In this document: positions 1,754 to 57,800 of the stretch, one piece after another | Layout of the letters: each line of letters begins with the position of its first letter | How positions within the stretch are numbered: position 1 is the first letter of the stretch | Source of the DNA: Fimbriosthenelais zetlandica | Lineage: Eukaryota | Assembly: GCA_977030845.1 (NCBI GenBank) | Contig: OZ365114.1 | Coordinates: forward strand, 25,358,001 to 25,422,000 | Length of the DNA stretch: 64,000 nucleotides | Direction: 5' to 3' | Made by a program: the position numbers and the translations under genes | The notes under the pieces: model-generated | Seen by the model: the letters and a program-made list of their open reading frames with translations, nothing else | Told to the model about the DNA's origin: nothing | The model's database searches: none

Positions 1754-1759
1754 GTAAGT
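1754..1759 (+). other. EXT1: 5' splice donor of EXT1 intron 1 (CAA|GTAAGT, phase 2)
   Basis: The sequence reads GAC AA|GTAAGTG, a consensus U2 donor. It splits the Lys codon of YDK, matching the exon 1/intron 1 boundary of human EXT1 (YEK|YDY, recalled). Confidence 0.95.
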
Positions 1760-1775
1760 GTTGTCAACTCTCACT

Positions 1776-1977
1776 AGATAACTTATCTCAACTTTATTGT
1801 TAGAAGAGTGAATCCTTATCTAGTCTCCATCCCGTTGATACTTTTGTTGCCTTCCCACTGTCACTGGTCGCGAGATAAGGTGAAATCCGTGATAAGATAA
1901 TGAATGGTGGACAAAAATTATGCCCCCTTCTTATCTTTTGACAGTTTTGTTAATATTTAATAATGTCCTAATGATAA
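1776..1977. promoter_or_regulatory. Homotypic GATA-site cluster at the start of intron 1 (candidate enhancer)
   Basis: Eight WGATAA/TTATCW sites start at 1776, 1783, 1816, 1873, 1890, 1895, 1931 and 1972. They include an inverted pair (AGATAACTTATCT) and a tandem pair (TGATAAGATAA). Confidence 0.55.
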
Positions 1978-4900
1978 GTGTCCAAAATGGTTACTTTATT
2001 TTACGGAATAGTACATACATATACACACAGAACTGAGAAGTGTTGATATTATTGGAAGAGGTTTGTCTTTTTGATAGAGACTTGACTTTGGTGCCAAACA
2101 TTCCTATACAACGTGTGGGGTGATTCATGAGTCATTGCCATTGATTGCAACCATTTATTTGTACTCAAAGTTTGCAATCATATCCTGAAATGTATGGATA
2201 ATATTGTATAAAGTAAGTTTACAGAATATAGATTGACTGGATGCTTACAAGTAGGTCCTTATCACTGCGGTATTTGTGAAGGTTCTGGTATCTGATAATT
2301 ATGAACACAATATGATAGGGGTGAACTTCTGTGTAAGTGTCATCCTGATCTTCATAAGTGAACCAATACACAAAGTAGGCCTATAGTATACCAAGGCAAA
2401 TTTCCAACTGATCCCAATTTAGATGGGAAAAGATCCATGTCTATCATGGAGGTATTTGTGAAGACTTTGATGTGTTTTGACTTATTTTGATAAATTATGA
2501 AGTGATTGGGTTGACATTTAGCTGTATCATGAATGTTCTGATAACACACAAGTGATCCCAGTTTAGTTGGGGAGGGGTGCGGTTAGTGGAAGATACTGGG
2601 TGCTCATTCTAATGGGAGGAAGTTTAGAGAAAGAGTGGAGGATGAGTGAGAGAGAGTATGACCATCAGAGACCAATCTCTACACTAAACACTTCACATAT
2701 CGATCCAGCTGTTGCTTCCATAAATGATGCCCATACATCTCAACACTGTCTACAGTACATACTGTAAATTCTATACTTCAGCCTTGTTTGATGAATTTTG
2801 CGGGTATATGCGTCACAACTCGGACCTGTCCATCCAGACATTGTCTGTAGTTTGAATGTTGTAGAAACCTGGATGTTGCTCCTGGATGTCTTCCAACTGT
2901 CTGTTTAGTTTGGTCTGATTCTCCATCAAAGAGGGTCAACTAAATTATTCATATATGTATTCAGACAGGATTTCATAGGATTCATCATCAAGTACCAAGT
3001 TTAATAATGATAATCCTCATGTTATTTTGCTCAATATTGTGATATAATACAAATTATTTTGGTATATATACAAATTATTGAGACACATTATTGTGGTATA
3101 CCAATGAATGCCAATCATAAATGGACCTCGGGGCGTATTTTAATGCTTCTAAACTTGTTATCTAAGTGCCAGTATGAGGACATGGATGCCATGTGCTGTT
3201 CCCTCATACTCATTATGTGGAGTTAATTTGTCAAGGCTCTCGTACATCATGTATATGAGTAAGTGAAATTGCTTGGCTAAATGAGGTCCTTGTGATGTGG
3301 TGCATTGACCCGCTGTCCGGTAGCGAGTTACCATGTTGAATAACCATAGCTCAGTAAGGTTGATAAATTTATCTACTATTAGACATGCTCTGCAAGCCAC
3401 ATGAATTTATTTCCATCCCTAAAAAAAACACCATTAGCCTAGATAGGAACCCCCAGGTCATCTATGTTAAATAGCACATCACAAAATGGAATCCAACTAG
3501 GATCTGTTAGGTTATCTTTATGTAGTAGCTTTTTTGTGAGGTACTAGGAACATTAAGTTTTCGTTAGTGCTTATTTTCGTTGAAAGAAACCTGGAAACAA
3601 ATCTAGAAATAAACTCTGGCGGAGTTCGGTGATTGACAAAGTCTAAATAATATCAAGCTCCAGCTTGAGTTTTTCTTGACTTTGGAGGTTTTATCTTCGC
3701 CTGAGATGTTGAGTGTTTATCGATGTTAGAACTTAGTAATGCCTCACGGGCTGATGAGGTTGCCCCTGTCAAAAAGAAAGCCAGAATTTGTGTTTATTTG
3801 AGCATCCAACAAGGGCAAGAATGTTTATAAACGGACTTAAAATGGGAGTACGTTGGTCTGGGTCTGGGTTACCTCAGTGACAGTTAGTACCATGGCCGTG
3901 ATGGCATCTTCTCTACCTTCACTACCCCGCTCTACCCAAACAACACTCACACCAGTCACATGTGAGAATCAATATACTATATACACACTATCATCTTGGA
4001 CATGATTATTTATCCTTCAACTCCTCAGTCCACTCTCCCTCCAGAGACAATCTTTGAATGATTCTGTTTTGAATTATTTCAATCACATCCCTCCAGATCC
4101 CGATTCTCTATGTCTTTCATAGTAAAACATCATACCTGTAAGCTGAGTGTATTATGACTGAGGATAACAGTTGTTTCTAAAGTGTGGTATTAAGTCTCAG
4201 TGGCTTAAGTTTTGTGAGTACACTTGGCCTTTCAGTGAGTAAAGGGAAGTGATGTATAGATGCCATTATCTCCACTCTCGTGCGTGATGCAATGGAAATC
4301 CACCTTGGCATCTTGACAATAGTAGGTGAGAGCACCGTATCTCCTATAGTAGGACTATTAAGGCTACACAGAAAAGATGTGGGAGATAGCTCTTACAAAT
4401 ACAGCCTGTCAACGCTTAACTCTTGCCAAGTATTACTGCCAGGTAGGGCATCACTTGGCATGCTTATACATGCTCCTGTCCAACATTCACTGATGGCACA
4501 TTCCTAAGATCAGAATTAGCATATCTGTACTGAGAGAGGTCAATGGAACCCTACGATCTGCATTAGGTTGGTCAGTTGGCCAGAATAGTAATGCATTGAA
4601 TGACAACCAGAAGGTAGATCAAGCATCAGAAAATCTCAGCACCTGACCCTATTACCAATTTGGAAGATAACTGGCTTAAGGCTATATTAGACCTATAAAA
4701 ATATCGGTCTTAGTTGCCCTGTAGCATCACTAAAGTATAATGGTTAGGAATAATCCCAATATTGAATTGTTGGGATATTTTGAACTGGAAAGGGTCGTGA
4801 AAGCGGGTGATACGTTTGTCATTGACAGGATATCATGTTAAGTGGACATGGCTGTCTGGGTCTGTCACGAGGAAACATGGTATGTTTTATACCGCTCTCA

Positions 4901-7084
4901 AATGTTCCCGTCTCAGACGAGGAAATCATATCCACATGTGAGAAAATGTGGAACATTTTATTAATGGGGAACGCTCATGCCCTAGATTTAATACGTTTTG
5001 CCTCTCCTCATTTTATAATTTGGAAAGTGGAACCTTTTAAAGTGTTTAGCTGTTCCATGTATCCGATCGTATCTCCCATTTTACAGTCGGTGTAATACTA
5101 GGCCTGGATATCCACTGATGAACTGTAAGGAAATGGGAGATAATAATTTTCAAAAGTAGCTAAAAATGTTGTCATTTGAACCAGTAATGCATGATATGAG
5201 CCCTATAAAACTGTCAAGGCTGCAACAATTTGGGATAATATTCAGTGCAGCGAGGGCTTATTATCTTAATAAAAATGTCCAAAAATCACCATTACTGTCC
5301 CGAAGAGTCAGTTTTTGCTCTTAAATATCGGCCACGAGCTGGAATATTTACTGCCCTCTCAATTATTTTCTGTAACAATGTGTTCAGAATGTTGGAAACA
5401 AGTTTGTGTTTGGGCTTCCTCAGTTACTAATGGTTAGACTTAAGAAATACCACAAAACCGCAGCCCCTCAAGTGCCTGTGCACCTGCTACTGCACCTGCT
5501 TTATATGAGACTGATCTTCATGGGACTTTGGACAATTTATTCCTCATTGTTAACAGAATCAATCTCTGTGGTTAATCCATCAACATAGAGCTCTGGTTCA
5601 CTGTACATGCTTAATTAAATGTGCGACTCTATATAATATATATTATCTAGAGTCACTTTATAGCTCGGATGTAGTCGAAAATAAGCTCAGATATTGCATC
5701 CTCCTCTTGCAGGTCCAGATGCTACCACACTGGCCCTGCTAGATCCTATGCCCTTTCCCCGGGAGGACCACCTACTGAGCGACTTTGACCTCCTTAAACT
5801 TGTATTACCCCATCATCCAATGAGCTAAGCCCTTACTCTAGCTATGGCATCCTGGGGAACCCCTATCTTTCTTACCATAATAGAAGTGTGTGTCCTTCAT
5901 CCATATAACTATATATAACTTGATATGCTTCATCAATGGCAATGAGCTGTAGTCTCCGTTGGTATTTTTCTTTCAATAACATCTCTCTCCATTTTGGTGT
6001 CCCCACAATGGACTAGTGAGAGGCAAAAATATGGGTATAATACCCTCAGAATATATCCTCCTGTCCTATGTAGCAGGCATTATATTTCAACTTCTCAAAG
6101 TACAATACCTGCTCCTTTATTATCGGGAGTAGGCCTAAATTACAAAAACAATCGTCTCATCCTCCTCCATGTTGTCATGTTTCCAAGCTAAGGCTTCCCT
6201 TTTGGCTAGTAATATTAAACAATGTCACTCTGGAAGAGTTTTAAAGACGGGATTCGGAAAACTTGAATATCTCTGACCTTTAACTAGCTTCCATGGTTGA
6301 AACTTGAATTTCCCTCGCCTCTTACAACAAGGCTTCTTATTGGTTATCATCTAACCCCTTATCCCCATCTGACCCAGAAACCAACGGAATCCTCCAGTAT
6401 ATTCTAAAAATAGATGCGTCCAAGACAGTGGACGCGGGACATCTGATTGGAGGAGAAGCCTGATTAATTATTCATGAGTTCCCAGGAATGTGGGGACGAT
6501 CTGGCAGGGCGTCAGACGGAGTTTATGAAACGGAGGAAAGATGCCCTGCTGTGGGGAGGATGAGATATTGAGACTGTCAGGACTTTATGCCCGAGGCTGG
6601 GAAAATGGTTTCAGATATTTTCTCCGCTTATAATGAGGATATTGTTAGGTTTTATGCGTCACTCTAAGCTGAGAATAGTAACTGGCGTTTACAATTACTT
6701 CATGCCGTTATGACGTAGTAGGCCTAGTAATATATGACACTGAAGAAAAGTTGGCCAGACTGAGTATAGAGTTTGTAAAGTTTGGATCTGTGTTGAGGAT
6801 GACACCGTGAAGGTAAAGTGATGAGAGGTGTTGATTAGCTGCTCAGCCTACACACATTAACATCTCCCTTATGGCGTTTCCATCTCTCCATCCTCAATAG
6901 TAAGACATTTATCAGCAGTGTGGTGCAGGATTCCCGCTGTCCACCCCTTCAGAGCAGATCACAGAAGATGATCCTTTCATGTGATCAGGGCACATCATTC
7001 TTTACCGTACTATACCCCCTGATAATACATCACACCTGAGAGAGGGTGGTGGAGGGGTAAATCTACAACCCCGGTCTCCTATAA

Positions 7085-7111
7085 CCCTCCCCCACCCCCC
7101 ACCCCCCACCC
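7085..7111 (-). repeat. (CCCCCA)n-like tract; G-quadruplex motif on the minus strand
   Basis: CCC T CCCCC A CCCCCC A CCCCCC A CCC gives five G-runs with 1-nt loops on the template strand. Confidence 0.75.
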
Positions 7112-10100
7112 ACTCATCTCCCAGGAGGCATACGCGGGTTATAAAGAGTGAATGATTAGACCCCCATTTAAAATACAGTGAATCTCTCCCTTTAGAGTAG
7201 CCTCCACACGCCAGACTGAGCCAAGTTATATAGAGGGGCTGGCCAGAGGTCAAGACTAGTGACCCTGGCTTGCTTGGACCAAGTAAAACATGCAAAGAGC
7301 TGACCCAGGGGTCTGGATCGTGGATGCTGGCTGACATGATGGGTCTAGCCTGCCTGGAGTGCTCCAGCCTATACAGACTGAGGGCTCGTTCAATGAGAGA
7401 GAAGCTCAGAGCATATCCAGGCCGTGAACCACTTCCTCTGCTAGTTAAATTATCTACTATAGATGTGTTATTTATAGTAAGTACATGATATTCACCATGC
7501 AAGACTACAGAGTGGATCCGGGTCAAGGAGTCAAGTGTTGCACTTTACTTCTGGGTTCCCAGTTCACATGCTCAACCATTGTTATGACCCATAAAATATT
7601 TTCTCTGTCAGATCTTTTAAACTTCTGGTCATTTTTTCTTGATCTGATGCCGTTTTCACATGCATGCTTTGGGGTCAGTACAAGCGAGTACACTCTGGTT
7701 CTCAGAATGATTTTTTTCTGTGCTACCAGCCCAAAGTACCAGCTAGGCCATATGTAGGAGCCCAGTAATAACAGCTGTGTGATTTCCACCATATTTCGTG
7801 GGTTCCTGGGAATGGTTCGAGATGTTGCCATGAACATGTATAACAAAGATGGTCATTACCATGATTCTGACATGATAATGTTTAGTGCATGATGATTAAT
7901 CATTATTGTCTTCACATATTCTCTCTCGCACAGCCTTCCAAATGAGTTTTCTCACACAAAATGGCCCATTTAAGGCAATAAAGGCTTGTACCATCTTAAT
8001 AGTGAATTGCCCAGGCGTTTTCCAGGGCCTGTGATTCACACGCCTAGAGCACGTAGATCAATAGGAAACTGGGTAGTATGTGATGACCCTCTTTGGGCTG
8101 ACCCAGGCCAACATGCCTCTCACATCGCCCAATCTAAATTTACTTTACACAAACCACGCCAAACCATCTCAGAGATAGCCTGCTACATGATGAGACCCGA
8201 CCATCTCAGACAGGACCGAGAAAATGGATCTGTGTGTTTGTGACTTCCAAGAACCATGTCTCTGGAATTGAAATTTCATGGCAAATTCTCATTTGATTTA
8301 AAGCTGGTTGGTATACATGTATAAATATGCATATTAAAATGCCAAACCATTGAATAGTGTTATTTCTAACACACTTACCACCCTCTTTTACCAAGCCCGA
8401 ATGGAATGTTGTAATATAATTTCATGGAAAGTCCATTGATAGTACAATCGGTCATTTTGCGTGGTAAGTAGTTTTAGAGGCGAGCAACTGGAAACATGCC
8501 ATTTTTTGGCCTAGATCACTATATGATGAGACCCCAGCCAGTCGATAAAGGCTGGGGGCTTGCTTGCCAGTCGCTAGAGGGCGGGATACCATATTTTACC
8601 CTGAGGGAACCTTTTCACCTTATCCCCATGTAATAAATAGCTGGCACTAGACGGTCCTTTTGTGTTACATCTCCAGCTAGCTATCCTAAATGACTAATGA
8701 TAAATTGAAGACACGAGGCTGAAGATGAGACTGAAATGTCTCCATCTTGATAGCTAAAATGAGAGCTCCCATAATAACAACTCTCCATCTCCCTCTATCT
8801 ATACCAGACATTGAAAACTAACCCGGCCAAATCTACATTCCCCGTGCCCGCCAGGAAAGGTAATTATTTGAGATTTTTCTATATGCAGCTCTCAAGTGTA
8901 GCAAGCATCTCGCCTGGAGAATGAATGTTATTCCCCTCTTCCTGCTTGTAAGCGGGGTGAAATACGACGATTGGTCACAGCCTCTAGGTAGGCACGTGGT
9001 GAGGGTTCGGCGCCGCCTTACCTATATATCTAAATCACCTCTTTTTCAGACAAGCTCGTCTACAATCTGGGAGCTCCATTGCTTTGCTTCGGACACTTTT
9101 TTTCACCCAGATTCTCTCGCCTAAGTCTGTGATCCTAATTCTCCTGACGCCTGCACCTCCTGCTGATAGATTCCACACAGGGTTTGTGTGTATTAGAGAA
9201 ATGGACGCGGCAGTGAAAATAAATATGTTATCATATCAACATCCAATACTGCCTGCTCCACTATAAAACTCTGTTATTCTCAGTATTTCCTTGGTTAAAA
9301 AATGTCCAAATGGAAAAAGTGCATCAGCAAAGAGATGCTCCGAGCAATATAAATACTACATCCTGATGGACTGGCGCTTTCTTCAATATTTTGAGAAGGG
9401 ATTTACAACTGTTTTTCTGTTGTAAAACGTTTGATATTTTAAAATTCCCTCTCTCCTGCACTCACGTCTTAGTATTGAGTTTGTGAATTGAATATAATAG
9501 CCAAAGGACGAACAAAATATGGGCATGCAATATGTAATGGTTTGCTCCACTCAAAACATTGCTCTGACCTTTGTGTCATACTACTAAATTTATAGTAAGG
9601 AAGCAATAAAGGACTTGACATTCAGAGGAAGTGAAATTTAAAACAACACCCTAAAAGTTACACCATCCGTCTCAGGAAATGCCAAGTTTTAAATCAGCCA
9701 CCTCGCCATTGTAAAGCTATTTTTTCTCTGCTAAGTCGATATTTGAAGAGAGGCGCCCACAGTTAGTGCTATACCATTAATGCTTCCGGCCCAGAAAAAA
9801 AACCCTCCGCCTTCCTGGAACAAAGATAACATTAACCTATCTCGATTTATATAACCGACTCTCCAGCTGTAAGGCCAGAGAGGAAAAAGGTGAACGGAAT
9901 AATAGCTCCTCCAAGAAATGGATAAATCACGTGTATGAATGAAGAAAACTGGACCCAGCCTGGCCCATGTATTTGTTGGCAATTAGGCCTTCTTCATTCT
10001 TTCATTCGGATGAAATAATGATGGGAAATGAAAGGTGTTAAAACAGGTTCCATTCTCGTGTAGCTCTGGCTTGGAGCCAGCAGATGGGATTTTAAATAGG

Positions 10101-13100: not shown

Positions 13101-16100
13101 CTAGATAACCGCCTCACATCTCCCAGTTTCTTTCCTCTACAGATGAAGTAGAATGCCCCCCTCCGCAAGACTTGCCGCAGGCAGACACGAACTCAACTAA
13201 TGAGATGCTATTATCCTTGGTTTTTACCAGCTTTTTGTGGGGCAATAAGCTTAAGCAGACATAATTAAAGTGACATATCCTAGGTGTACACATGAATGCA
13301 TCAAATCTGTGACAGCCTCACGGGGCTTTGAAGTTGAATGGACCATGGACATGGTTACAACTGATGCATTTAATGTTACAAGTCTCACTCTCACCTTCCA
13401 TGGTGTGTTTTACCACTCCTAGTTGTCATGAAATGAGGCTTTGTCGAAGATAAATTCTACACTTTTTTCCTTCTTTCACGCCTCGATTTTTCGGATCAAA
13501 GTTACCGAAAGATGAATTTGAAAGATCTATGTGAAAGTGAAGCGTATGGATTTGATTTCCACATTTAATGCTTTGCTATAAAACTAGCTTTGTGATCACT
13601 TACCTCACCTAGTTCAGGATCGATCAAAAGGAAAAGTGAGATTGTTGATGGAAGATTATAGAGTGTATTCACCATATCCTCCCCACTCCTCTAACTTCAT
13701 CTGGATCTCATTAAGTCAGGAACAAATACCTCCTGGCCGTTCCAGGAATAAATCCTTCCGGGTAAATTTTATTTGTTTACTCAATAGACTGGGCCTGAGA
13801 TTGGTCTGGAGAGGCAGTCTGGTCGGTGGAGAAGCTTTGAAAGCCTGCATATCAGGGGCGACGCCGTCTAGGCTGATCCAGTTATGAGTATTTCCACTCA
13901 ATATGAGTATTATTAGTACTAAATTAGCGCCCTACTTCTCCCTGTGAATCGAAACAATACCATTAATGATAATATAATAAACCTTAATTCCATCTTTATT
14001 ATGGGGGCAACAGAAAAATTCGGGTCAACCCCCGCAGTCAATGGCATGAGCTGTTGCTGCTCATACACGAGTTGCTCGTCTATTCACATCATATCAGGTG
14101 GAATAATGGTCCTACAACTCAAACCTCCTGTCTGCAAGTGTATTTTCTCAACCTACACGAAAACAGAATTAACATTTTTTTACATCCCATGCAGCTTAGT
14201 AAGAGCTGTAGGCTGTAAATCCATATGATACCATTCACAGGCCTGCTGGCATCTCAGACTATAGCTCCACTCCTCCTGCCAGCACCATCATGCCTATTAG
14301 CATGTCAATATGTGTGTTGATCCAATGCCAAGTTTGCCACTGGTGACTTGCTTCTTGTTATTCCCATTTTAGATGTTCAGACCTGAAAAAAGGAAGTTAC
14401 AGACAGTATATTTCCAAGCTACTATAAAGAGAAGAACATTTCATTACAGAGTATATGTGCTTGTAGTTATAAGCTATGAAGCAGCTTATAAGATAAATAC
14501 AAGGTCTGTAATATTGTCAATGAGATATTGTACATACACATCAGATTGCTTATTTTGCATCCACTTGCTATACTTTCACCATGTGGGAAAGTAACATTGC
14601 CCCGGGGACATTATGAATATCACTTGACTTTGCAGTGAAGATTAGTAGAGTAAGATTTTAAGCTGGGGATATGTAATATGCCATAGCCCACCCTCTATAG
14701 AGCTGGTCTCCACCTGTACCTTGTTTGTTTTCACAGATTAAATGCAGGTTAGAACTTTGCATACCAGGGAATATTCCCCTGTCTCTCAGTGTATTAGGGG
14801 CAAGAATGTCCATGTCTATTATAGAGTCTGGCTGCCGTTAGTTATCACATAACCCATTCAATTTGTATCCCCATAGACAACAAACAGAAAATTTCTCGTT
14901 AAATTTACTGGAAAATTTACCCATTAAAATGCGAGAAAAAATTAGGAAGGAAACGGAGGAAGGGATGGAAAGTGAAGGGAAAGGAGAAATCTCTGGTGAA
15001 GCCACCAACTCAGTTCTTGATCTCACTGATGGGTCACTCAGCATGGGGTTCAGGGCCTCCCCCCAGTACACCTCATGGATGGAGGCCCGCCCAGCAGGCC
15101 CTCCCCCTTCTCACCTTTACCTCTTCTCCCTCCAAGTCATATGGAACCAATGAGCTGACCAAGCATGTATAGGACATTCTCAATATTAATCTTGAGATAC
15201 CATTAGATCCGGTTTCACAAACCTACTCACACATGTTCCTTGGCATTTCATAACCAGACAACTTTGATAAAATTTCACTCTTCCACCATCTGGAGAGCAA
15301 GGTTGGAAGAAATATTATGGGTATGAAATTCGACCCTTCAACAGAAGGTTGGGGCCTCGTGCAGCATCCAATTTTACTTGGTATATTCTGAACTTTAGCC
15401 AACATTCCCATCCTTCACCCTATAGTCTGTATGTAAGCTGTCCCAAAGTTTGTTGTCACTTAGATGTAGGCAGAGTAATGGCATTTTTATGGCCTTCAAT
15501 TCATCAGCCTCTACATCGACGAAAACCGTGCAAATCCACCATTGTCAGTCGCAGTATGCCTGCTTTCGTTCAAGCGTCAATTTGTAATTGTTGGTCACAT
15601 TCCAAAAATACTCTCTGTCTGCTAATCGGAGTGAAACCACGTGGACTTTTTCATACCAATTTCTTAATACATACCACTGTATATATCTCCACTGGTTACC
15701 TTGACGACATCCCACCGCACCTGAAAATATGTCCAACGTTTAGAAATTTGTCACGTATTAGACAGAATATCCCTCCATTAAGACATTACCTGTTTTACGA
15801 GGTCATGTCTAAAGGATGAATTTCATAAGAAAAACCTTGTATTCCATAACAAATATATACTCTCTCTATTTTTGGAGTATAGTATCTGATGAATTTCATG
15901 GGTGTTTGTTTTAGAAACATTTGTTATGGTGCAGGGTGTAGTTTCCACTACTAACATCGCCGATCGGCGTAACTGCTATCAAATCAGAAAAAGAGATAGA
16001 TTCAATTTGTAGATGTCTAGGAAAGAATAGAATATGTTTGATTAGGGGAGGATGATACTGGAGAGTGGAATAACTCCTTCCTGGCATGCTACATATTTAA

Positions 16101-19100
16101 GATAATGGAGGCCAGCAGAAAAAAGAGAAGAATCGGATCTAAGGTTCATCTAAGCATCCAATTGAGATGTAATCAAGAGGGTGCGATGAATGTCGTAGAG
16201 AATTCTATATAAAGCCATCGCTCCTGACTAATTGAGAATATTGGAAAAAGGCCCTCAGCATTGCAAAGGGTTGATTAGGTTTTAAGTATTTTAACGTGCA
16301 TCTGGACAAAAACTAAGATTGCCATCTGCGTTTATCCCTCAGCAATCCCAATCTGTGTTGCACTTAAATCGTAGAGAAAATTAGGGAAATTAGGGAAATT
16401 ATCTAGATTGTAATATATTATTATAATATATTCCAAAGTCTGGTTTGTGGATCAGGAATAGGTAAAGCTAGGATGATCGGCTATGTGCAGGATTCTGCTT
16501 CTTTCTGCTGCTCGGGTCTTTTTGAAATGCAGCAGGCACAACGAAGGTTAGCAGGCGGTGGGTCTCTACTGTACTTAGGTTATCCCCTCAGGTGCATGCC
16601 TCCGCTCTGATCAGGGCTGACAGCTAGAACGGCCTGAAGACTTGACTCACTTGGCCACATATTGCCTGCACATGGTCTCTACATAGCTCAAGGGGATCTA
16701 TTCCTTCTCTCTATGTTCTCTTATGCCAACACAACCTACTTCCTAAAGTCAGTCCTAACAGAAACTGATGGAGAACCTATCCACGCTTCTTGAATCTCAG
16801 ACTTGAATTAAAGTTCATGATGATAGGTTTACTATTGTGAGATGGGGGAAATATATGTTTTATGGAGGTTCATGTGCCAAGAGTGCAAGTTCATAATTGA
16901 ATTTTTATCCATTCAGCAGCTATTTCATATTTCACTATGATGGCGGGCGAATCATGACTCTAACAGACCATGTGCATTACCATAGGGCGGCCACCACCTA
17001 ACCTTTCCGTGGAAAGTGGAGACACTCCTATTTCTGGAACTGTCATTCAAGCAGGTCATTTTTTCCAGCTTTTTTGACATTTATTTTAGCCCGCTCACAT
17101 TACAAGCCCTCTTCATAGCCAGGTTGTTTGTTTAGCTTTTCAGCGAAGGAGTTTTGTTCCATTTCGAAACTCTTTAGATGTCAATTGAACTTTTTCAATA
17201 AGCAGATGATGTTTCCTACATGCTTAGTATGGATAAATGCCATTGAGAAATCATCTGTGGAGCTGCCAAGGCCATCTATAGTTTGTGTACATGTACTGGA
17301 GTGGTGGTGAGCAGTCTACTGACCAGTGGTTACATGTAGGTTGGTAGTAAGTGTTTGACATGATGGTCGTTTCATTACGTCCTATGCTCAGGTGACTGAT
17401 AGACCAGGTCCTACTCACCATCACAGCAATCTTTGAACTAGAACCACGGCCAACACCTGTTCATACCTGGAAGCACACACATTCCCCCCTCACCCTCTCA
17501 GCCCTCCAGCCGTGTAATTTACCTGCCAACCGGGTTAATTTGGACCTGGTCGGATAACCGATACAAGGTGTTTCAAGTGGGGATTTCAAGGATAAATACC
17601 CGGCTATATGACAGATATAAGCACTGACTGGTATACCACTGGTCTCTGTCACTAAAACTGGCCATATATTTAGCACTCACTTACCTGATGTGCATATTAA
17701 AGTGATTTTGAATCATCCGTTATCTTATCCATTTGAGACTAAAAAAAAAATTATCTTAAGCAGCATCTTCTGTGTGAAATGTAAGTGCATTAAGATAAAT
17801 CATGTACACGTTTCTTTTAAAAAATATTAATAATTCCCGTTAGATCTTTTGATCTTTGTCATGCTCTGATAGATGGAACTTCTGAAGGAAAAGGGACTGC
17901 CCCTGATTTCCAGGGATGAACTATAATTGTTCAGATAATCGTATATTACATGCCTTGGTTCCCAACCTGTTTACTAATACTGAAAGTTGGATCCTTCTGT
18001 TTCAATACTGTATTACTTTGAAGTATGCACATAACCCCCATCTGTCTAGACACAAGATGAATTAAGGTAGCTAGGCAGGGATGTGTTTACTCCCAGTTCA
18101 AGGGCTATAAATGCATTCCCCGGCCATCCAGTGAGAGCGGAATCTGGCGCAATAGGCAGCGTTATGATCTATGCCAGGGATCGGTCCTGCCTTTGTTTGA
18201 TATCCATCGCCACAAGAAAGAAGATGAATTAACTTTTTTGTCCCCCAGTTTGTTTTCTTTCTCAGAGAAGAGATCACTGAATCCTATATACAGTGGAAGT
18301 AGATTTTAGTCGTATTTGATTCTATCTATCTTTATGTAATGGAAAAGATCACAAGAATTATGTGGTCCTGTGAGATAGATATATGAAATCGAATGCAGTA
18401 TTGTCTGTCTATCTTGACAGATCTATAGATATAATGTTTTAGACAGATAGAATGTCTGTTTACCATGTTATATGGCACCAGTTAGAACTTAAGGCGACAG
18501 TGTAAATTTTGATGACTGACCCCTCAAGTAGACATGTACTAAATTGCATTCTGACTGCACTCTAGCGATAAGATAAATAATGGAAGGACCGATTGTTCTC
18601 CTGTGATCAGATAAACTTGGATTACATATATTCAGGATGCTGTGATAAAAAGTCCGAGATCAGGCCGATTTCTACCTCCACTCCAACCCGCATCTACCCC
18701 ACAAATCCAAATCTAGTTAAAAAGAAATTAGATTAAATCATTCTCCAATATACTTCTCCTGCCCGGCCCTGCAGCATGCCATTTCCTTTTCAAGATAAGA
18801 AACAAAAACTCCATCTCAATGATAGGGGATATCCTATATCGCCACCAACCAGATACAATTGTCCTGTCTGTCTCGTCTCTCAAAATATGTTTCGCCATAT
18901 ACAATGTTTGATTGCTATCCGCTTGCTTTGATATAGCGGTAATTTAATAGCCAGCGGGAATGCGTGTAATATATTTGCAATACCAAACGATTATTGTACA
19001 ATAGATGGCTGTTTACTCGACTCTGATGGTGCATCTTTCCATTACTTTACAGAAGCCCCCTTTTACGTGCATCTCGTTTTTCCCTGCACATTAAGAACTT

Positions 19101-22100: not shown

Positions 22101-25100
22101 AGAATTCCCCTTCAGGATTTCTATGAGTTTGTATTAAGCGGAAAGACATCCACTTCTTCTATGATTAAAATCCACAAGAGTTGAAAAGAAATTTTGACAT
22201 ACATGTAGTTTCTTTTGAACTTCTTGTCCTTAATATGGACCGGAATTTTTCCATCAGTGTATTGGTGGGAATGTTCTCTTGATAACCATGTAAATCAATG
22301 ATAAAAAATAAGCTTCATGAAGGTCATGGTCTAGAGAGCCCAGACAGTTAGAGTTGACATAGTGACCCATAGCTTGCTGGGATCATGGCCTTTGTCCCTA
22401 TTTCACTGTAGATTTATTTCTTCCCCAGCAGCAGTCACCCCCATCTCAACACCTCTCAGGTAGATAGACCTTTTTACAGGTAACTCCCGTGCTTTAAAGC
22501 CTGTAAGATATCCTCACTGTTACAGTGCTGCAGCTGCCTGTAATCTAGCTGAGGATATATTATTTAAATGCTGGTATATAGGCGTGTAGACAGCTATATT
22601 AGATTGCCATATATCCCAGGTGTATTTTTATGGATCCAGCTGTCTCGATTCCCTCCCTTCTCATTTATTTTTTTAAAAAACATCGACTTCCACAACTAAT
22701 GCAAGTTTGAACGAGTACAACCAATCTGTATTGAATACATTTGACAATGCAGAAACTGTTGCCTTTTCTTTGGATCTCATAAAAGAGTCCATTCCTTGGC
22801 TGGAAAAAAGACCATTGAAACGACTTGTAAGGAAGGTGTAGACCGGAATCCTGACACGCCATCCATTGGGTGTGTTTAAAAAACAAATAGCTGGTTTAAG
22901 TTTACAATGGGCGGGTGAAAAAGGTGAAATATAAGCTCGACCCGCCCACAGGCCTGTCTTCCTGCCTGGCCTGCCCAGGCTCTATACCAAGCTGCAGGGG
23001 TTGTTCAACTTTCACAGTCCTGATACCTCCTTAATACCCCCATCCTGCGTCTCACCCCGCTTTTGTCTCTGCCGGCCATGTTTGGGAGTGGAATGCGGCC
23101 TCTGAACATGCCTTGGTAAGCTGCTCCACTGAGTTACTAGGGGCTAGCAGTCTTTTTTCTCCTGCTTTTTATTATGCATATCATTGATCCGTGAGCACCT
23201 TTGATGTTTCAAGTTGCCGTTAAAAACTGGCCAACTGGTACTTGTGGTGGGTTCAAGGCCCGCCTCAGCAATGAACATTCACTTGATGTGTGAAAAAAAT
23301 GCTTGCATATATGGAAGTTGCCATCACAGACTTCTCATGGGAACTCGTTCACCTTTTCGTGAAACCATATTTTATGCCCGAAAATAATGATCATGAAATA
23401 CATCTTTTTTGATGCCTTTGTATAATCATAGACCATAAAGGTGAATAATTTAAGTAATGCATTTTATCAGTAGTTGTGAGAAACATTCACGGAATCCCAA
23501 CGCTATTTAGAAATCAAAAACCGTGGTTTAGAACAGCTCGAAATGAAAAAAGAAATCTTCGTGAAGGGGAAAAGTATTTGCCATTGCCAAAAATATCAGA
23601 TTACATCTGAGTAAGTGCATTGCTAAGTGCATTCTTGGAGCACCTGTTTCATTTCTATAAGATCAGAAGTTACCATGCAGCATACAACACCACCCTTCTA
23701 ACTGCAATACAATTTGCCATTGCTTTTCCGCAATCAAAAAGTTATGCATGACCACACAGTTAACCATAATATTCCACGATTAATAACCTGAAATTAATTG
23801 GAGAAATCACTTCCCAACAAAATGTATTTGTGTCTTTGTCAAACCGTATGGTTGGGCAGGTTGTATCTGCCCTTTTTACATTGACAAATAGACTCCTTTG
23901 TCAGACCATTGAGGCTGCAAAGAATAGATTCAAGGTGAAGTTGGTTGCCACAGAAAGTTATACCACGTTTTCAAAGCTCAGAAGAGGGCAACCAACTCTG
24001 AGTGTTTTTACCAGGGTAAAGTTTACAATCAACTGCACAAAACATGAAAGAATCAAGAGTTTGAATGGAAAGGAAAAATTAAGGCTCCTCGGAGATTCGC
24101 ATGCTGTGCACATGAAAGAACCTTTGAAGTGACAAAAGGTAAATAATGTATTTGATACCATTCTGCCCATGTTCACCCTCTACGGGAGCTATGCAAATAT
24201 GTCTTTTTCAATTGGCACACACACGTGACTGTCTATTACCATGGGTCTTTGTGGATCCCAACTTGAAGATAAAGAAGCCTTCACTAGGTAGGCCAGCTTA
24301 TCAAATAAATACCTCACATATTGCATTCATGCACCATTGGCATTATACATTCACCCTTATGTTCCCAATCTTTTAAAATTGGGCTTTTGGGTAAAAGTGC
24401 TTTACTGTCAACAGTGACAACCCCTGTTGGTTGCCAGATATTGCTCGTAAAACAGAAACTGTTTATAGAGAGAAGAGAAATGAACAAACATGGAAGCACA
24501 CAACAGCAGCGAGGCAAACAGTGGTATCGATACATGACCCGGACATGTCTTTTGCCTGGAGTGCATGGAAAAACAGAAGGCAGGTCATGGCGGTGTGAGT
24601 GTTATGACCACTTTTGATGTGGCCTGTTAGCCCCAGCCTGCCTCATGTCGAGGGATGACCCAGCACTGGGGCACTGGATCATGATGGCAGGCCAATGATG
24701 GAGGGCCAATGATGGCTATACATATGGACATGGAGCTTTTACTCCCCTCTCTCTTTTTCCATCTCACCACGACCCTCCCGCCCTTTCACTTAGTCTATTT
24801 TTCCGAGGCCACAAATTTAACCATATTTTTGAAAAACACCCCCGAGGGGATGCCCTGACCATTGGCAATCATTTCTGCTACCTGCATGTATATAGCTGAA
24901 ATAGCTCATGCTCGTAGCATAATTGAGGGATAAATTTAGTCAAATTGTGGTACAAATTAGAGAAAATCACCGATGGGTAACTGATCTCTGGCAATTGCAC
25001 TGCTCCACTCCACCGTGCTGCTACTGCTCCACTATGATATCAAATTGATCGATGGCATTAGCAATTCTAATTCTTCTCCTCTGCCCACAGTTCTCCACAT

Positions 25101-28214: not shown

Positions 28215-28471
28215 CGTGTGGAAGGTCGCCGGTTCAAACCGAAAACTAAAAAGTGGTACTAGTGGCTCCCTCGCTTGGCATTCAGCAATAAAAGGACAGT
28301 GCTGGGGCTGGTCGACCTGGTGTCATTATAATGTGACTGGGTGATTTATTAAGTTATGTGTGTCTGTGACATGATACCACAGTGAGGCATCGCTATAAAA
28401 GAGCATAGGGCTCACTGTCACAATTAGGCATCGTCATGATATAGATATGTTGAAAGTTACGTTAAACAAAC
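28215..28471 (+). mobile_element. Degenerate tRNA-derived SINE with Meta/MESC-like core
   Basis: A B-box-like GGTTCAAACC (28231-28240) is followed by AAAAGTGGTACTAGTGGCTCCCTCGCTTGGCATTCAGCAATAAAAGG. The body contains ATAATGTGACTGGGTG and CAGTGAGGCATCGCTATAAAA, and the tail is TGTTGAAAGTTACGTTAAAC. This layout matches Meta-core SINEs of molluscs and related animals as recalled; it was not database-checked. Confidence 0.7.
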
Positions 28472-36359: not shown

Positions 36360-36397
36360 TTGATCTCATAATTTTTTCATTTCCTTTTTAGGTAAGT
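36360..36397 (+). other. Recursive splice site RS1 (branch point, Py tract, TAG|GTAAGT)
   Basis: TTGAT (36360-36364) and CTCAT are branch-like; ATTTTTTCATTTCCTTTTTAG (AG 36390-36391) is directly followed by GTAAGT (36392-36397). Confidence 0.8.
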
Positions 36398-36445
36398 ACA
36401 ATTCGAACGATCGATTCCTGAATGAAATGAGTAATTTCGGAGTTG
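36392..36445 (+). other. Cryptic RS-exon 1 (54 nt) closed by TTG|GTAAGA at 36446-36451
   Basis: A good donor lies 54 nt after the RS1 acceptor; a weaker alternative TGA|GTAATT is at 36431. Joined to exon 1 the exon reads AAG TAA, so it would be a poison exon. Confidence 0.6.
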
Positions 36446-36571
36446 GTAAGAGCAAAGTAACTTTACTTTACTATATAATTTGAGTATGTTTTTGCACTAG
36501 ACTAGTAGGAAATAGTACCTCGTGGCATATAAGTAATTGTAGTCAATGTCCTGGAATATGTGTGCACTTCC

Positions 36572-42383: not shown

Positions 42384-43334
42384 AGCCAAATGCTGCCAAC
42401 AGTTAAATAACGTTTCCACCACGTGAAGCCCCGGCAAATGCTCCAATATGCCGTCCACCCGATTCCAGAAATCAATTTGTCATCCGCTAGCCGAGGCAAT
42501 GAAATCGACATGGCTACCTGTTGGAAGGGTCGCCAGGTTAATGATTACATTACCCCAGCACGCCACCAAATGACTTGATGAATGAATGTCTGGAGATATA
42601 AAAAATGTCCAAATCTCCTGCTGCAGGATTTGGTGGGATGACCCATGAAGGAATATCCGTCCTCCAGTCCATGACCAACTGGAAATTAATATGGCAAAGT
42701 AGTCTGCAATTAACCCAGTTTCCCCCGTAAATCCACTTGATCAGACATTCCAAGTAATGACTGGACAAAAAGAGAGATTCCTTCATTATGGAATTATCAT
42801 TTTCATTACTTGCTGAAGTATTCTTTTTATGCTATAGACTTCTGCTGCTATAGAACTTTCTGGAAGTAATGGCGAAAAATATGTAGGGTAGAGTGCATGG
42901 GAATCGGCTTGTAGCATGATGTATAAGTACATCACTTACAAGAAAGAAGCCTGGAAAGTTTACATATACATGTAACGATCCAATTATGATTCATATGGAG
43001 AGAGGCTGGATTGCCTATATGAAGACCACATCATCCTGGGTTAGGGTTGTCTGAGGGAGGCATCCTATATCTCATCAGTAAGGGTACTGTGTAAGAGGAG
43101 CATTGCTGTTCTGCCTGAAGCCATCGATTTATTAGTAGGACTCCATGTACATACTAATTACTGCTGTCATTGTTGGTTCTTAGCCAGGCGTAGTAATTAG
43201 AGTTGTCTGCCTCAGTGGATTAGACGGATCTCACCAGAAGTAAAACTCTACGACCTGTCTGCTTCATGAGACAGGCTGGTCAGGTGCTGCTTCAAACAGC
43301 CAGATGTCATTCACCCCAACTATATGTTATTGTG

Positions 43335-50700: not shown

Positions 50701-52800
50701 GACATCCACCACAAAGCAATACCAGAACGATTTTCTTTCCCTGGTTCCCACATAACCTTTCCCTGATCACTTTCGAGCTGGAGGAAGGACACACGTAGAT
50801 AAATCTTGCTCTGTCACTTTCTTTCGGAGTATTTTTCTTGTTGGTCTGGCTCTGCAAACTTTTATATTGAGCAGAGCAGATCGATGTCTTACAAGTGCCT
50901 GGCAGCGATGGGGATGGAAACAAAGAGATGACTTTAGAATTAGTCCAGATGGTAGCAGGTGAGGAATAGATCACTGGCTTCTGCCTGGCCCATCTTTTTA
51001 CTGGCTCATTACCTTTTTCCTTGGCTGTCAGAACGTTGACAGACCATAGATCAAGGCAGAGGATAATCTAAAGAAATGACCCTGGGTGGTCTTTGTGCAC
51101 GTTAGGGGGATCATAAGTCGTGGTACAGCAGTGAGTGATAGGTGGCGTGGGCAGGGGACAGGTTCAATGTGCACATTTCACATTACCGCTGGAAGGGATT
51201 GCTGAAGAAGGCTGCACTGTCGAAAACTTATTGAGAAGTTAGTTGTCATTGATGTAATGTATTTGTGGCATTTTGCCATACGTTGATGCCAGCTATATAT
51301 TGGGCCATATATCTTGGGAAATGGAGCGATGCTCTATGATTGGCTGTCAAAACACATTTTTGACCATTTTAGGGAAATAAGGTTTCCGCCCTTTGAAGCC
51401 CTTTGACAAAGCATTCATTTCCTACCAAACGAAATAATACATCAGATGTGGCTGTGAGCTGTGCTTGCCTTTCCAGGAGAGTGGCCAAGCCATGCTCTCT
51501 CTGCCCACCATGGCTTGGCGAAGCCACAGGAAGGCCATTAGAGGCCTTACACAGACCCAATCTGTCAGAAGTCAAATGAAATATCCCCCGCTCTACCAGC
51601 CTTGATGCCTCCGAGCGTGATAATGCATTTAGAGTGAGATTAGAGCTGGAAGCTCAGCCTAAATGGTTTTACTAGATTTACCTTTAGGTCATGTTATGAT
51701 CAGGCTCCACCTCCGCCCTAAGGCATTAAATGCTGAGCTGAGGCAGTTCTACACAACATGCAAAGTGATGGGCATACTAAGTGATTTTTTACATGTATAT
51801 ATGGCTTTTTGTGCAAGAAAGTATCAGCATCTCCTTTCATTTGATGCTCCTTAAATTGTCCTGATACCGAATAAGCACTGACTCCATTCTTCTATAACAC
51901 ATGATTCCAGGCTACAGTAACAGAAAAATATGATTCGTCGTTCATAGGTCAAACGAATGGAGAGCCCTGTGTTTATATGTTGTGTCTGCATGGAGAAAGA
52001 AGGCTCTTTGCAGCCTGAGGAAAAATGCGAGTTTCTTGAGTGAGTGTAACTCATCTTAGTTTAGTTGTGTGTGTTGTATATCAACGACTGAAACGTGACT
52101 ATTGAGTGAGACAGCCATTGAGATGAAGTACATGTGACTACTTTCAACAGTAGAAACATTGAGACCATGTAACTTCTGTATGAGGAACATTCCAGTACTT
52201 TGTATTCTGAGGAGGAAATCCTGTCTCCAATGATAGCTTCCAGATCATTAATCAAATCAGGCTTTTTTTAAGTTCGCATCCATTGCTAATTTGAACTGTC
52301 AATAAGATTAAGAATTACTTCCATATAATCTTCCTTTGCATTCCGTGAGCCATTGAAAGTGGTGCAGCGGCAGACAGGAAAAACTACTCCCTCTCTCTCC
52401 AAAGTCATTAATGATAAACAGCTCAAATACATTCCCCCGTGTTTCAATTAAGAATTGTACCCAGGAGAATGGTGCTTGCCAATAATTGACGACTAGAATT
52501 TGATGTGGAGATATTCATAATGGCGCTCTGATCAAGCCTGTTGCCATGACATTCCCGAGGATCAGGCGCAGCCAACAGCATAATCATCAGCGACTGAGCA
52601 TAAAATGTACATATCTAATTGTCTCAAATGGATTTCCTTCACGAGGAACTTCTGTACCTAACTAATTCTATCCTGTCATGGTGAAGACTGCAGTCACCCT
52701 GCATGCACTGCCAGTCTGGGCATAGATTGTATCTCCTATCAGTTAAGAGCATTTAGCAAAACTATGTAAAACATACCATGATAATATTACTTATCCAAGG

Positions 52801-52840
52801 TTGATTGATTGATTGATTGGAACGATTGATTGGAACGATT
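52801..52840. repeat. (GATT)n microsatellite with GGAACGATT interruptions
   Basis: TTGATTGATTGATTGATTGGAACGATTGATTGGAACGATT. Confidence 0.85.
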
Positions 52841-54723
52841 CTGTCAGTATCATTTATTTTATATTCATAATTAGTTTCCTGTGGTAGAGCAGTGCACGGA
52901 TGATGACAGCAGACTATGGGCAAAAGACGTTACTTGAATCTCAGAACCATCATTTTTGAATCATGAATGTTGAAAACGTTATGAATATTTTATCCCACCT
53001 ACTGGTGAAGGCCCATCTTTTGAGTTGAATCCTACATGTTACTTTCAATGGATTGGTAGGATTTAAGCAATGATGTTTTAATTTAATGGTCTGTCTTGAA
53101 AGGAACTGGTGCTGAACCCTATTTGACTTTTTAGCAGCCTCTCTTGGAATAATTAGCCTGCTTATCCTGTGCTGGAAAGCGTCCTAGCAATTATCGATCC
53201 CTTTGCCCAATTCTGAAAGCGTTTAATCATCCTTATTCCCCCGATTAAACCAAGAAGGGCTCTCGTAATGGGACACGAACCAGCTGCCATGCCGATTCCA
53301 TATCCATGAACATCACTTACACCCACCTTACTCAAAATTCTATTTAAGGAACTTTCTTTGGTTTTACAATTTAAAAAAATGGATGGAAAAAACTGCTATC
53401 ATTAAAGTCCATGGTGTGGGAAAGCCATGACGATTTTCAGATGGATGGGCGGGTGTAAGAGGAGGATCATAAATCTGAGAGTGAAGCCCAATCAGTACAA
53501 TTTAGCACACACATCACATGGCTTCCACATGGCTTCCTCATGTGTCTTAATCCCAGATGGAAGCCATTCTGCTTCCCTAATGGAAATGAATGCCCCATAT
53601 CAAGTGAATCTCTTATATGAAGTAAGCAAACTGATGCCCATTCATATATATATCTCCCTGCTCTAATGAATTTAAGGGAAGTTGGTGATGAGGATTTACT
53701 CACTCATCAGTCGCCGAGCAAACTTTGAAGGCAGGCCATGGAGGACCTGATTCCTCTCCCTTAAATAAACATTCCCCTCTCATCATCACCCAATGCTTGC
53801 CATATTGTATTCTAGGTCTCCATGCATCACAGGGAATATTAAACATCTATCTTAGCAAACTTACACCGTCAAATGCTGCCATACTCCAAAAATGCCACAT
53901 GCTTTGTTCTAGATCCTATGGATAGGATCCCAATGCGTTGTATTATGAAAGAACTAATGGATGAAACGAAATTAGATACAATAGAAACTTGAGTGTATTC
54001 AAAGTTAAATTCCAGTAGGTTGCATGCCTTGTGGGTGGGATGGATGGTATAGGGCTTGCCTTTTACCTCGTGTAATGTATAATCTGAGTAAGGATATTTA
54101 CCATCATAATATAGCATAGACATTCACAATCGGGGATTCGCATGGTGTAAAGACGTTAGTAAATGATGCATGATAAGCAGGTAACGTTAGGGCTACCATT
54201 ACAGGTCATATTCCTCAGTCCAGTCGTTAACATGCTGCAAGAGGAGATGGTGCCACCCATCTGAAACTCTACCTCCCGCATTTACTTTTCCGGTGTTACC
54301 AACATTGTAGCCTACAGTTCTCATTAATCTGTCTAAACGGGATATAAATTGTCATATATGGAACGAGGAAAAGGCTTACCTTAATGTACTATTACCCATT
54401 TTGAGAATCTTGCAATGTTACTTAATGTATAGAGAAGGGTCAGCAATGTGCTCGATGGATCCATCATACGAGTCAAAGATATGACCCCGACTCAACATAG
54501 CGGGTCTCTGGAGGCCCACAGGCTCGTTTACCATGGCATTATGCATTCATGAGAGTCCAGCACAATTATATGCACAGCTCCCTGGTCTCTTTATTAATTG
54601 CCTGATACCATGTCATAAATGGAAGATGGTCATCTCCTTACATTCTGTTACACTAACGTATTCTCATGTTTTCTGCCTGTATCGCATTATGATTACTAGT
54701 GTATCATGTTCAAATATCATTCG

Positions 54724-54759
54724 CTGATTTCAATTTTGTCTTTTTTTTTGCAGGTAAGT
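54724..54759 (+). other. Recursive splice site RS2 (branch point, Py tract, CAG|GTAAGT)
   Basis: CTGAT (54724-54728) is branch-like; TTTTGTCTTTTTTTTTGCAG (CAG 54751-54753) is directly followed by GTAAGT (54754-54759). Confidence 0.85.
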
Positions 54760-54806
54760 TTCCCAACTAGACTTCATGTCTGCATTTACTATGTTTGCTA
54801 CCATAT
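54754..54806 (+). other. Cryptic RS-exon 2 (53 nt) closed by TAT|GTGAGT at 54807-54812
   Basis: A consensus GTGAGT donor lies 53 nt after the RS2 acceptor; an alternative GTG|GTAAGA at 54851 would give 97 nt. Joined to exon 1 the exon reads AAG TAA. Confidence 0.6.
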
Positions 54807-57800
54807 GTGAGTATGAAAGTCTGTGCTGAGCATCCATTAGCCAGAGAGTGGTAAGATCTGAGTTACTTTAGCCACCAATAAGATAGATTTTTATGTCCTG
54901 GGTCATTGAGACCAGGGCTGACCTTGTAAATGTCAGTGTATGAAGTAGGGATATATTTCGTTCGTCACTGTCAGTGCCTTCCATCAAAAATGAATGTAGA
55001 AATTGATAGGGAGAGGATGATTCGCTAGACTTCTGTACTCGACAGATGTTGGTCCATCCTAATGATAGTGGGGCAATTCCGCTGGCATAACGCTATCGCA
55101 CATGTTTTTTGTGGTCTGTTCTTGAGCTTTCCAACTTTGAGATTGACATATCGCTTCTGTTGAGTGTAAATCTCCTCCAGGACAACCCGACCCTGGGTTA
55201 TGGTAGTCTCGATGAGACAGATTTGACAGTCGCTGTCAACTTTCACAGTTAGAAACATAAATTGGACTCATATTTGGGTCGGAGAGATGGTCTCGTCCAA
55301 CAAGCCTTAGCTGTCTCAGGGTCAAAGATCCAGGCAGAGGCAATAAATAAGGTCCTAGCTTTATTCTGTCTTGGACCTTTCAGAGCTGTTAGACGAAGTC
55401 TCGGTATTCTTTTCAGATGGCCATTCCATTCATTTGCGACTGGGGTACCATTATACCCAGGGTATAATTTATACTGTATCGCTTTCTGTGATGTAATTTG
55501 CGATATGAAATCTAAGTGGGCTTTGCAGATTTGCGATATATTTTATTTGCATTCTTTTGGTGGCAACATCACTTGATAAGCAAACAGCGCTATGCATGCT
55601 TTTCAAAGTAAATTATACCCTGATATACTTTGTTCAGAATTGAGCTTTCCAACTTAGACTTGATCTATGACGATTGACAGTAAGCTCTTCATTAGACAGC
55701 AGTCCACCCAGTTTCTACTGACACCAAGGTCAGCCTGCTGAGAAAAAAAAGTGAACCCAGCAGTTCTACTAAGCTCGGTCCAATCTCTTTGACGGTGATT
55801 GAAAAGGCCACAGACTTCTGAACTTGATTTGCGATGTGGCTCAGGTGGTCCTTGGGGCATGTGCATCATTATGGGCCTTGCTCAGTGTGACCGCTGTGAA
55901 GCTGTGAAAAGGGATGGAAGAAATAAAGAAATATAGACCCCAGCTACTGAGGTAATCTATAGACTGATCAGGAACCATGTTCCAACAGCCCTCACTGGCT
56001 CCCTCCAGTGACTGGCTATAGCGCCTCGGCTCCTTGCCTCAAGCTTTGGCTTAGAGAAAGGCCAGTACCTGCTGGCAACTTTATCACAGTGAGAGATGTG
56101 TTCCTGGCACTGGTCTTATCAGAGATCACCGAGTGAATGAAAAATAGCTGGAACAACCTGGTCAAGTACTTCTGTATGAAGAAAAAGTACGGTGCTCATA
56201 GTCGTGGGTTAAAAAGCTACCAAAATCTTGACTTCATCATTAATTTATCTTGCAGCATACACATGACATGAGTATCACTGTATATGTATATTCAATGGAA
56301 TGTAGCTGAGTTTCCAATGTCTTCTTTTATACTCACAAATCATGTTGGGTCGCATACCTATTTCATGAGGCTGGTATAGCTGAAGAGGACAAGCATTATC
56401 CTGTCCCATTGACAGTTTTCAGGATTTAGCATCCAACGTGGAGAGGCTTCAGCTTAATACAAGTAGCTGTAACACGCAAGGCTTGATCAATGCCATTGGT
56501 ATTGTATTATATGAACACAAGGCAAATGGAAACAAGGCAAGATGTTAGTCATTGGGACCAGCAATGTTTACCAATTCCTTGCCAGAAGTCTCTCTTAAGA
56601 GGTTCATCTATTTCTAACAAAGGGCTCAGGTGGACATAATATGTCAAGTGGATGTGGATTCAATATTCTGAGATTTCATATTCACTGCTTCATTTAGATT
56701 TTTGCTGAAATTGGCATTTGCAGTATATATTGAATACCACATTGGTGAAACCCTCTTACCATTGTAGGAGACGTATATTGAGTATTGGTCATGGCTATTG
56801 CTGGAATTAGTCCCTCATGTGGCCCATTTTGCCCTTGAGGTAGATGATGGACGGAGGGCAGAAGAAAATATGAGCAATAGAGACGCGGCCCTGCGTAATG
56901 ACCCCCTGAAAGTAGTATATGGAAAAGGTGCCCTCTTAGGAATTGGGGTGATTTTATGTAGGCCCCTGAGAATTGGCGCTGAGTAAAATACACTGAAAAT
57001 GTGATGGAATGAAGGTATATCCATTACAGCACTGTGGGGGCCTCCTGTGGTCCTGAAGTATGAGGTCTGCGGAAAAGCATATAATGAAACTAAGGCAGAC
57101 CCGTACACGATAAATATTTTAAGAGCTTTGTACCATATAACATCTGAAATGTTCTTGGAGGGTGAGGCGGTTTATCATTATGTGGGATGAAAGAATCACC
57201 CATCAGCTAGTTGGACTAGGTTTACACTGCCTAGACCAGATCATGTTGCTAGAAGCCATCCGGTATCAGCACAACTCCTGATATGTGAATTACACAGTCC
57301 CATCACGTTTTCAATCAATTCCTTTGATGTGTTAATACTTTTAATGACACCGCGCTGTCATATAGGGCACGGCTTTGACTTTCATGAAGATTTGCCCCTT
57401 TCACTGGATCCCACCAGTGATGAAGAGTCTCCTAAGAACATCTTGATGAGAGTATCTAGATTTATGAAGATATCACCATCACGTTGAACAGATTGATAGA
57501 TGACCTCGCCATGTCTGTGTACGTCCGGGCTTGGAACGAGATGAATTTCAATGTCCATACCAGACATTGATTTAGTAGAAAGTGTCAATGTAAAAGGATG
57601 CCCTGTTACGCCTGAACATGTCATTAAGGATCGTACACCTCTTGTAGATCAAAAAGTGATACGTTTACTGCCACACTCTATCATTCTGCTGCCATTAAAA
57701 GTTGCCAGCTGTGGTGGGGGGCGGAGACATGGTGGGCCTTGGGTTAGTCCGCTGACGCGTATAGCAGATCTGAAAACCCTGCTATGGATGATGTATTTCC

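Follow-up and report, generated by a model that had tools for sequence, protein, structure and literature searches.

To our knowledge, recursive splicing has been documented experimentally almost only in Drosophila and in a few vertebrate genes, and other invertebrates have been covered by genome-wide motif counts only. A stretch of 64,000 nucleotides (nt) of contig OZ365114.1 (Fimbriosthenelais zetlandica, assembly GCA_977030845.1, positions 25,358,001 to 25,422,000, forward strand; hereafter the window) was analysed, in which the first exon of an EXT1-type gene is followed by more than 62 kb of intron sequence. Two positions in this intron, termed RS1 (for recursive splice site; junction 36391/36392) and RS2 (junction 54753/54754), are probably intronic ratchet points of the Drosophila type in intron 1 of the EXT1 orthologue. 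The mechanism is well known; the fresh point is the comparison with related loci, which shows lineage-specific sites in an expanded intron.

Drosophila ratchet points (Ubx, kuz, Bx, luna; Hatton 1998, Burnette 2005, Duff 2015, Joseph 2018/2021) consist of a strong acceptor abutting GTAAGT, with TT at positions -6/-5, and lie on the sense strand of introns longer than 11 kb, several per intron, giving segments of tens of kilobases. RS1 and RS2 share each of these properties. In flies, TT at -5/-6 was found at 99.5% of ratchet points as against 44% of ordinary acceptors, the pyrimidine tract was described as "more prominent", and host introns measured 11-133 kb, the segments averaging 18 kb (2.6-63.6 kb) (Duff et al., bioRxiv 10.1101/006163). 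The present segments of 34.6 and 18.4 kb, and the intron of more than 62 kb, lie within these ranges. Fly ratchet points also depend on a cryptic exon (RS-exon) some 50 nt long, usually out of frame, whose donor falls short of the regenerated one in strength (Joseph and Lai, PMC8605326). The cryptic exons here would be 54 and 53 nt long, out of frame, and likewise have the weaker donor. Juxtaposed acceptor and donor, TT, a regenerated donor, a long sense-strand intron and an RS-exon of about 50 nt are thus common to the fly sites and to the present ones. The differences are that strong conservation across species is the rule for Drosophila ratchet points, whereas RS1 and RS2 are absent from relatives with an intron of 13-24 kb, and that the present sites are predicted from sequence in another kind of animal, probably a spiralian.

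The model applied here is that of vertebrate RS-exons (Sibley 2015; Blazquez 2018), in which the RS-exon is defined first, the two donors compete and a retained RS-exon has a premature stop; inclusion of either cryptic exon of the window would produce such a stop. Vertebrate sites of this kind in long introns are few, with no enrichment over antisense, whereas RS1 and RS2 occur on the sense strand only. The orthologous human EXT1 intron is also giant, and one exon-intron stepwise splicing product has been reported from it, as a single product of reverse-transcription PCR (RT-PCR) in a supplementary figure (Kelly 2015, PMC4482092). Enrichment of ratchet-type sites in sense over antisense orientation in large introns was described for sea urchin (8.2-fold), fly (21.7-fold), mosquito, bee and beetle (Shepard, McCreary & Fedorov 2009, PMC2773006). 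The kind of inference in that study, from sequence and from comparison of sense with antisense, is the same as ours; it gave genome-wide densities with no individual gene and no spiralian, whereas here one intron was compared site by site with orthologous introns. The first-pass annotation of the window knew of no recursive splicing in EXT1 or in a probable lophotrochozoan, and in view of the 2009 enrichment and the human EXT1 intermediate its claim to novelty was too broad. In other literature, EXT1 appears in Zhang 2018 in an elongation-rate table only, the accessible part of the Pai 2018 supplements lists none of the fly genes ttv, sotv and botv, and no spiralian is named in the titles of the 40 best-ranked of 474 publications on 'recursive splicing'.

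The octamer AGGTAAGT was searched on both strands of the window and occurs four times, at 36390 and 54752 (+) and at 13598 and 17679 (-). The features of the intron are as follows (scores are defined below).

1754..1759, + strand: authentic intron 1 donor GTAAGT (CAA/GTAAGT, donor score 9.1)
13598..13605, - strand: antisense AGGTAAGT, internal control (acceptor score -8.5, AG at -7)
17679..17686, - strand: antisense AGGTAAGT, internal control (acceptor score -2.9)
36360..36391, + strand: putative RS1 acceptor with branch-like TTGAT/CTCAT (A at -29/-24), pyrimidine tract, TT at -6/-5 and TAG (acceptor score 8.8)
36392..36445, + strand: candidate RS1 ratchet point and cryptic 54-nt RS-exon, beginning GTAAGT
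36446..36451, + strand: downstream donor of RS-exon 1 (TTG/GTAAGA, score 7.2)
54724..54753, + strand: putative RS2 acceptor with CTGAT (A at -27), a run of 11 pyrimidines, TT at -6/-5 and CAG (acceptor score 11.1)
54754..54806, + strand: candidate RS2 ratchet point and cryptic 53-nt RS-exon, beginning GTAAGT
54807..54812, + strand: downstream donor of RS-exon 2 (TAT/GTGAGT, score 6.7)
GT at 54851, + strand: alternative RS2 donor (GTG/GTAAGA, score 8.4); the exon would be 97 nt

Acceptor and donor are directly juxtaposed at both sites, as tttccttttTAG/GTAAGT at RS1 (joint score 17.7) and tcttttttttTGCAG/GTAAGT at RS2 (joint score 20.0). Pyrimidines occupy 15 of the 18 positions from -22 to -5 at each site, in runs of 10-11, and the 45 nt upstream of each are free of AG. 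YTNAY motifs lie at -24/-29 in RS1 and at -27 in RS2. Positions -6/-5 are TT in both, as against GG and CA in the antisense octamer controls. Joining exon 1, which ends in CAA, to either site yields CAA/GTAAGT, the same as the authentic donor (9.1), and the donors of the RS-exons themselves (7.2 and 6.7) are weaker than this regenerated one. After exon 1, which ends in phase 2, either cryptic exon would read AAG TAA, that is, lysine and an immediate stop. The predicted intron segments are 34,638 nt, 18,362 nt and at least 9,247 nt, the last running past the window end. Much of this had been proposed from inspection by eye, and it held throughout: the two + strand octamers are the only ones and lie where they had been placed, each follows a pyrimidine tract with a branch-like motif, the minus-strand copies are poor as acceptors, CAA/GTAAGT is regenerated, second donors stand 54 and 53 nt downstream (GT at 36446 and 54807), and the segment arithmetic is correct.

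Every AG/GT was scored with two matrices, one for the acceptor (position -3 and a pyrimidine tract of 16 nt) and one for the donor, both representing a crude generic metazoan consensus drawn from general knowledge rather than MaxEntScan or a species-trained model. This ranking, which had been suggested along with the sites, set them clearly apart: RS2 (20.0) and RS1 (17.7) are followed by a score of 8.1 for the next of the 211 + strand AG/GT and of 10.7 for the best of the 248 on the - strand (459 sites in total). By acceptor score only, RS2 (11.1) is first and RS1 (8.8) fourth among the 3,796 + strand AGs, and one of the 4,217 - strand AGs scores 8.8 or more. In 1,000 introns simulated with a third-order Markov model the top score was 17.4, so that none reached 17.7, and two sites of at least 12 occurred in 1.2%. 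About 125 kb of related genomes, scored on both strands (about 250 kb counted strandwise), contained no site above 11.1. The number of octamers (four observed, 2.1 expected; 16 of 100 shuffles reach four) is by itself uninformative, and it is their context that matters. The density of sites, at 3.2 per 100 kb on the sense strand against 0 on the antisense strand, resembles that of the fly in PMC2773006. The acceptor scores of RS1 and RS2 match or exceed the range covered by nine authentic acceptors of EXT1 in the relatives (1.6-10.2), which agrees with the prominent pyrimidine tract of fly ratchet points. Likeness between RS1 and RS2 is confined to a core of about 49 nt; neither repeat copies of their flanks (self-similarity at E < 1e-5) nor tandem repeats were found in the window, and both sites are in unique sequence rather than repeat copies. 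As read directly from the window, RS1 and RS2 are real and extreme outliers, restricted to the sense strand, and this is confirmed not to be a product of chance.

The coding part of exon 1 extends from 864 to 1753 (+), with ATG at 864 and 296 codons plus 2 bases (phase 2). Its predicted product begins MQAKKRYF and its 3' end reads GAC AA. The exon 1 protein matched Exostosin_GT47 in Pfam (E = 3e-31), and full-length EXT1 relatives used as tblastn queries against the window aligned over residues 1-288 only, stopping at 1751-1754. The exon boundary, after ...EYDK and in phase 2, falls in the same codon in all relatives fetched. Among proteins of exon-1-like length, the best named match was from the annelid Paralvinella (57%). 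In a maximum-likelihood tree of exon 1 the window and three relatives group with Paralvinella in a supported clade, apart from arthropods, Priapulus, sea urchin and vertebrates; the earlier attribution to a probable lophotrochozoan is consistent with this tree, which does not fix the phylum. Neither protein queries nor tblastx with exons 2-7 of two relatives detected further EXT1 exons in the 64-kb window, and as far as seen 1754-64000 (62,247 nt) is one EXT1 intron. An exact look-up among assemblies of the 297-amino-acid exon 1 open reading frame (ORF), which would be identical in any transcript joining exon 1 to RS1 or RS2, gave no match.

Relatives were ordered by the identity of their exon 1 protein to that of the window (92%, 80% and 72%, with two more distant clade members at 60-61%). 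The three nearest are represented as follows, L numbers denoting fetched sequences.

Closest relative, 92%: contigs of 2.1-2.9 kb only; intron unalignable 5 nt beyond the donor
Second relative, 80%: intron 1 of about 24.5 kb; exon 2 at L010 10313-10411, then exons 3-5; long contigs, taken in 10-kb steps
Third relative, 72%: intron 1 of about 13.2 kb; exon 2 at L011 14546-14623; long contigs

Intron 1 of the 80% relative contains no sense-strand site scoring 8 or more. In intron 1 of the 72% relative the sole sense hit (8.4) is the authentic exon 2 donor boundary, and no RS-like site was found. In the two members at 60-61%, whose intron 1 exceeds 10 kb, its first 10 kb contain no RS-like site. 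The flanks of RS1 and RS2 show no similarity to the loci of the relatives. Compared with the orthologous introns of the 80% and 72% relatives, that of the window is longer by a factor of at least 2.5 to 4.7. These introns are not collinear with that of the window, and absence of the sites therefore shows that they are lineage-specific, but does not show that they lack function. The comparison suggests that RS1 and RS2 arose along with intron expansion.

Outside the exons, a single stretch of 141 nt in the window (28308-28446) resembles the relatives, being 74% identical to L005 11126-11260 (also found in L004 and L008). It is single-copy in the window and lies 26.5 kb into the intron, whereas in the 80% relative its counterpart follows exon 1 at a distance of only about 0.24 kb. 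One possibility is a conserved non-coding element that insertions have pushed away by about 26 kb; another is a short interspersed element common to both loci. The shorter intron of the relative carries reverse-transcriptase ORFs (L008 16089-18648). The intron of the window is unusually clean, having neither self-similarity at E < 1e-5 nor tandem repeats nor an Rfam match, and only 3 ORFs of at least 130 amino acids, so that recent transposon copies do not visibly explain its expansion beyond the 13-24 kb of the relatives.

Chance would account for the sites if octamers at the expected rate had twice happened to follow T-rich stretches. The octamer count, with its non-significant excess, allows for this, and the features were picked after the sequence had been inspected; but ranks of 1 and 4 among 3,796 acceptors, the failure of all 1,000 simulations to reach even one such site, the failure of both antisense octamers as acceptors and the lack of any such site in about 250 kb of related sequence (both strands) all speak the other way. 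Chance juxtaposition was rejected on the score gap over other AG/GT, the acceptor ranks and the simulations, and we regard it as extremely improbable. It is unlikely, though less remote, that the sites serve another function through U1 or U2AF binding, as U1 sites that prevent premature polyadenylation, as donors of internal alternative first exons or as splice signals that an unrecognised mobile element brought in. Indeed, CAGGTAAGT / AGGTAAGT is an ideal U1 target, and lineage-specific sites would fit insertion. A role for U1 only, however, calls for neither a top-ranked acceptor nor TT at -6/-5 nor an AG-free zone upstream, and the flanks are not repeated within the window, show no similarity to relatives and match no Rfam family. 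An origin of the sites from repeats was rejected, as no self-similarity (E < 1e-5), tandem repeats or Rfam family was found.

A marginally better, still unlikely, candidate is that RS1 and RS2 are the acceptors of regulated poison exons, in which case the 54- and 53-nt (or 97-nt) exons would sometimes be included and would send EXT1 mRNA to nonsense-mediated decay instead of subdividing the intron. Inclusion would yield an immediate stop after lysine, both cryptic exons have usable donors (RS2 with the further one of 8.4 at +97), and vertebrate RS-exons are often expressed (PMC8605326). Yet GTAAGT at the exon start, once placed after CAA, gives a donor (9.1) above those of the exons themselves (7.2 and 6.7), which should make skipping by re-splicing the default. 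A poison exon also has no need of a perfect donor hexamer at its start, and two would be met by chance at about (1/4096)^2. The poison-exon and ratchet explanations overlap and do not exclude each other.

Several points weigh against RS1 and RS2 being ratchet points. RS1 and RS2 have no counterpart in the 80% and 72% relatives. Conservation of the core in related species, strong in fly ratchet points, had been proposed as a test in related EXT1 introns; the introns of these relatives proved shorter, unalignable and devoid of the site. The closest relative, at 92%, is represented by its short contigs only. Donors of RS-exon strength occur at about 1.8 per kb, so that one would be suitably placed by chance about 10% of the time for each site, and the RS-exons are modest, supporting evidence only; at RS2, moreover, the donor at +97 is the stronger of the two. 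The scoring matrices are generic, exon 2 was not found in the window, from which the whole stretch is read as one EXT1 intron, and both sites are predictions from the DNA sequence. The ratchet interpretation of the first-pass annotation is supported, on sequence grounds, by the outlier scores, the restriction to the sense strand, the unique sequence and the fly-like sequence features; in respect of conservation it is not.

If RS1 and RS2 act as ratchet points, U2AF would bind the pyrimidine tract and the AG at 36391 during transcription and U1 the donor 54 nt downstream, and together they would define the short cryptic exon at RS1. Exon 1 would be joined to 36392 and a 34.6-kb lariat released. 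The resulting junction, CAA/GTAAGT, would be the original donor again and would outcompete the weaker donor of the RS-exon, so that the cryptic exon would leave with the next intron segment. The same step would be repeated at 54754 (18.4 kb) and then onward past the window end. A retained cryptic exon would bring in AAG TAA, an immediate stop, and make the transcript unproductive. To the observed anatomy this scheme, which follows the fly and vertebrate models, would add that the sites are used, in what order the steps occur and that the cryptic exons are skipped. More tentatively, we suggest that the host animal uses constitutive ratchet points of the fly style and that these were gained de novo as EXT1 intron 1 grew from about 13-25 kb, the length it has in relatives, to more than 62 kb.

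This clean, sense-only array belongs to a conserved housekeeping gene whose orthologous intron is 3-5 times shorter and site-free in relatives. It is well suited to testing whether growing introns acquire ratchet points, and the EXT1 intron is also a test of the fly-type mechanism outside arthropods. If the interpretation is true, documented ratchet-point splicing would be extended beyond arthropods and vertebrates. Lungfish introns became gigantic without such a shift toward recursive splicing (bioRxiv 10.1101/2024.12.11.627982); if similar sites recur in the present genome and are real, recursive sites can, unlike in lungfish, evolve quickly with intron growth. The practical value is modest, as an aid to annotation (such sites should not be called exons) and as a candidate system for RT-PCR.

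Isolated acceptor-like sites on a par with RS1 (8.7-9.5) were seen at 25091 and 30883 (+) and at 55901 and 49086 (-), with no donor hexamer after them. One of them reads ctctttcag/ATGGATG. They might be chance occurrences, or they might act as acceptors for exons not yet annotated, on one strand or the other. The exon 1 donor (1751-1759 in the window) is AA/GTAAGT or a near variant (GTGAGT, GTAAGA) in every species fetched (L001, L004-L007, L012-L015). In phase 2 it reads lysine and then stop, and gene callers consequently list exon 1 as a stand-alone protein of about 296 amino acids in many assemblies. Inspection by eye of the region 5' of the start codon located GCCATTTTGACGTCATTGCC at 505-535, containing the palindrome TGACGTCA (the cAMP-response-element consensus) beside a GCCAT motif; this is a possible core promoter element.

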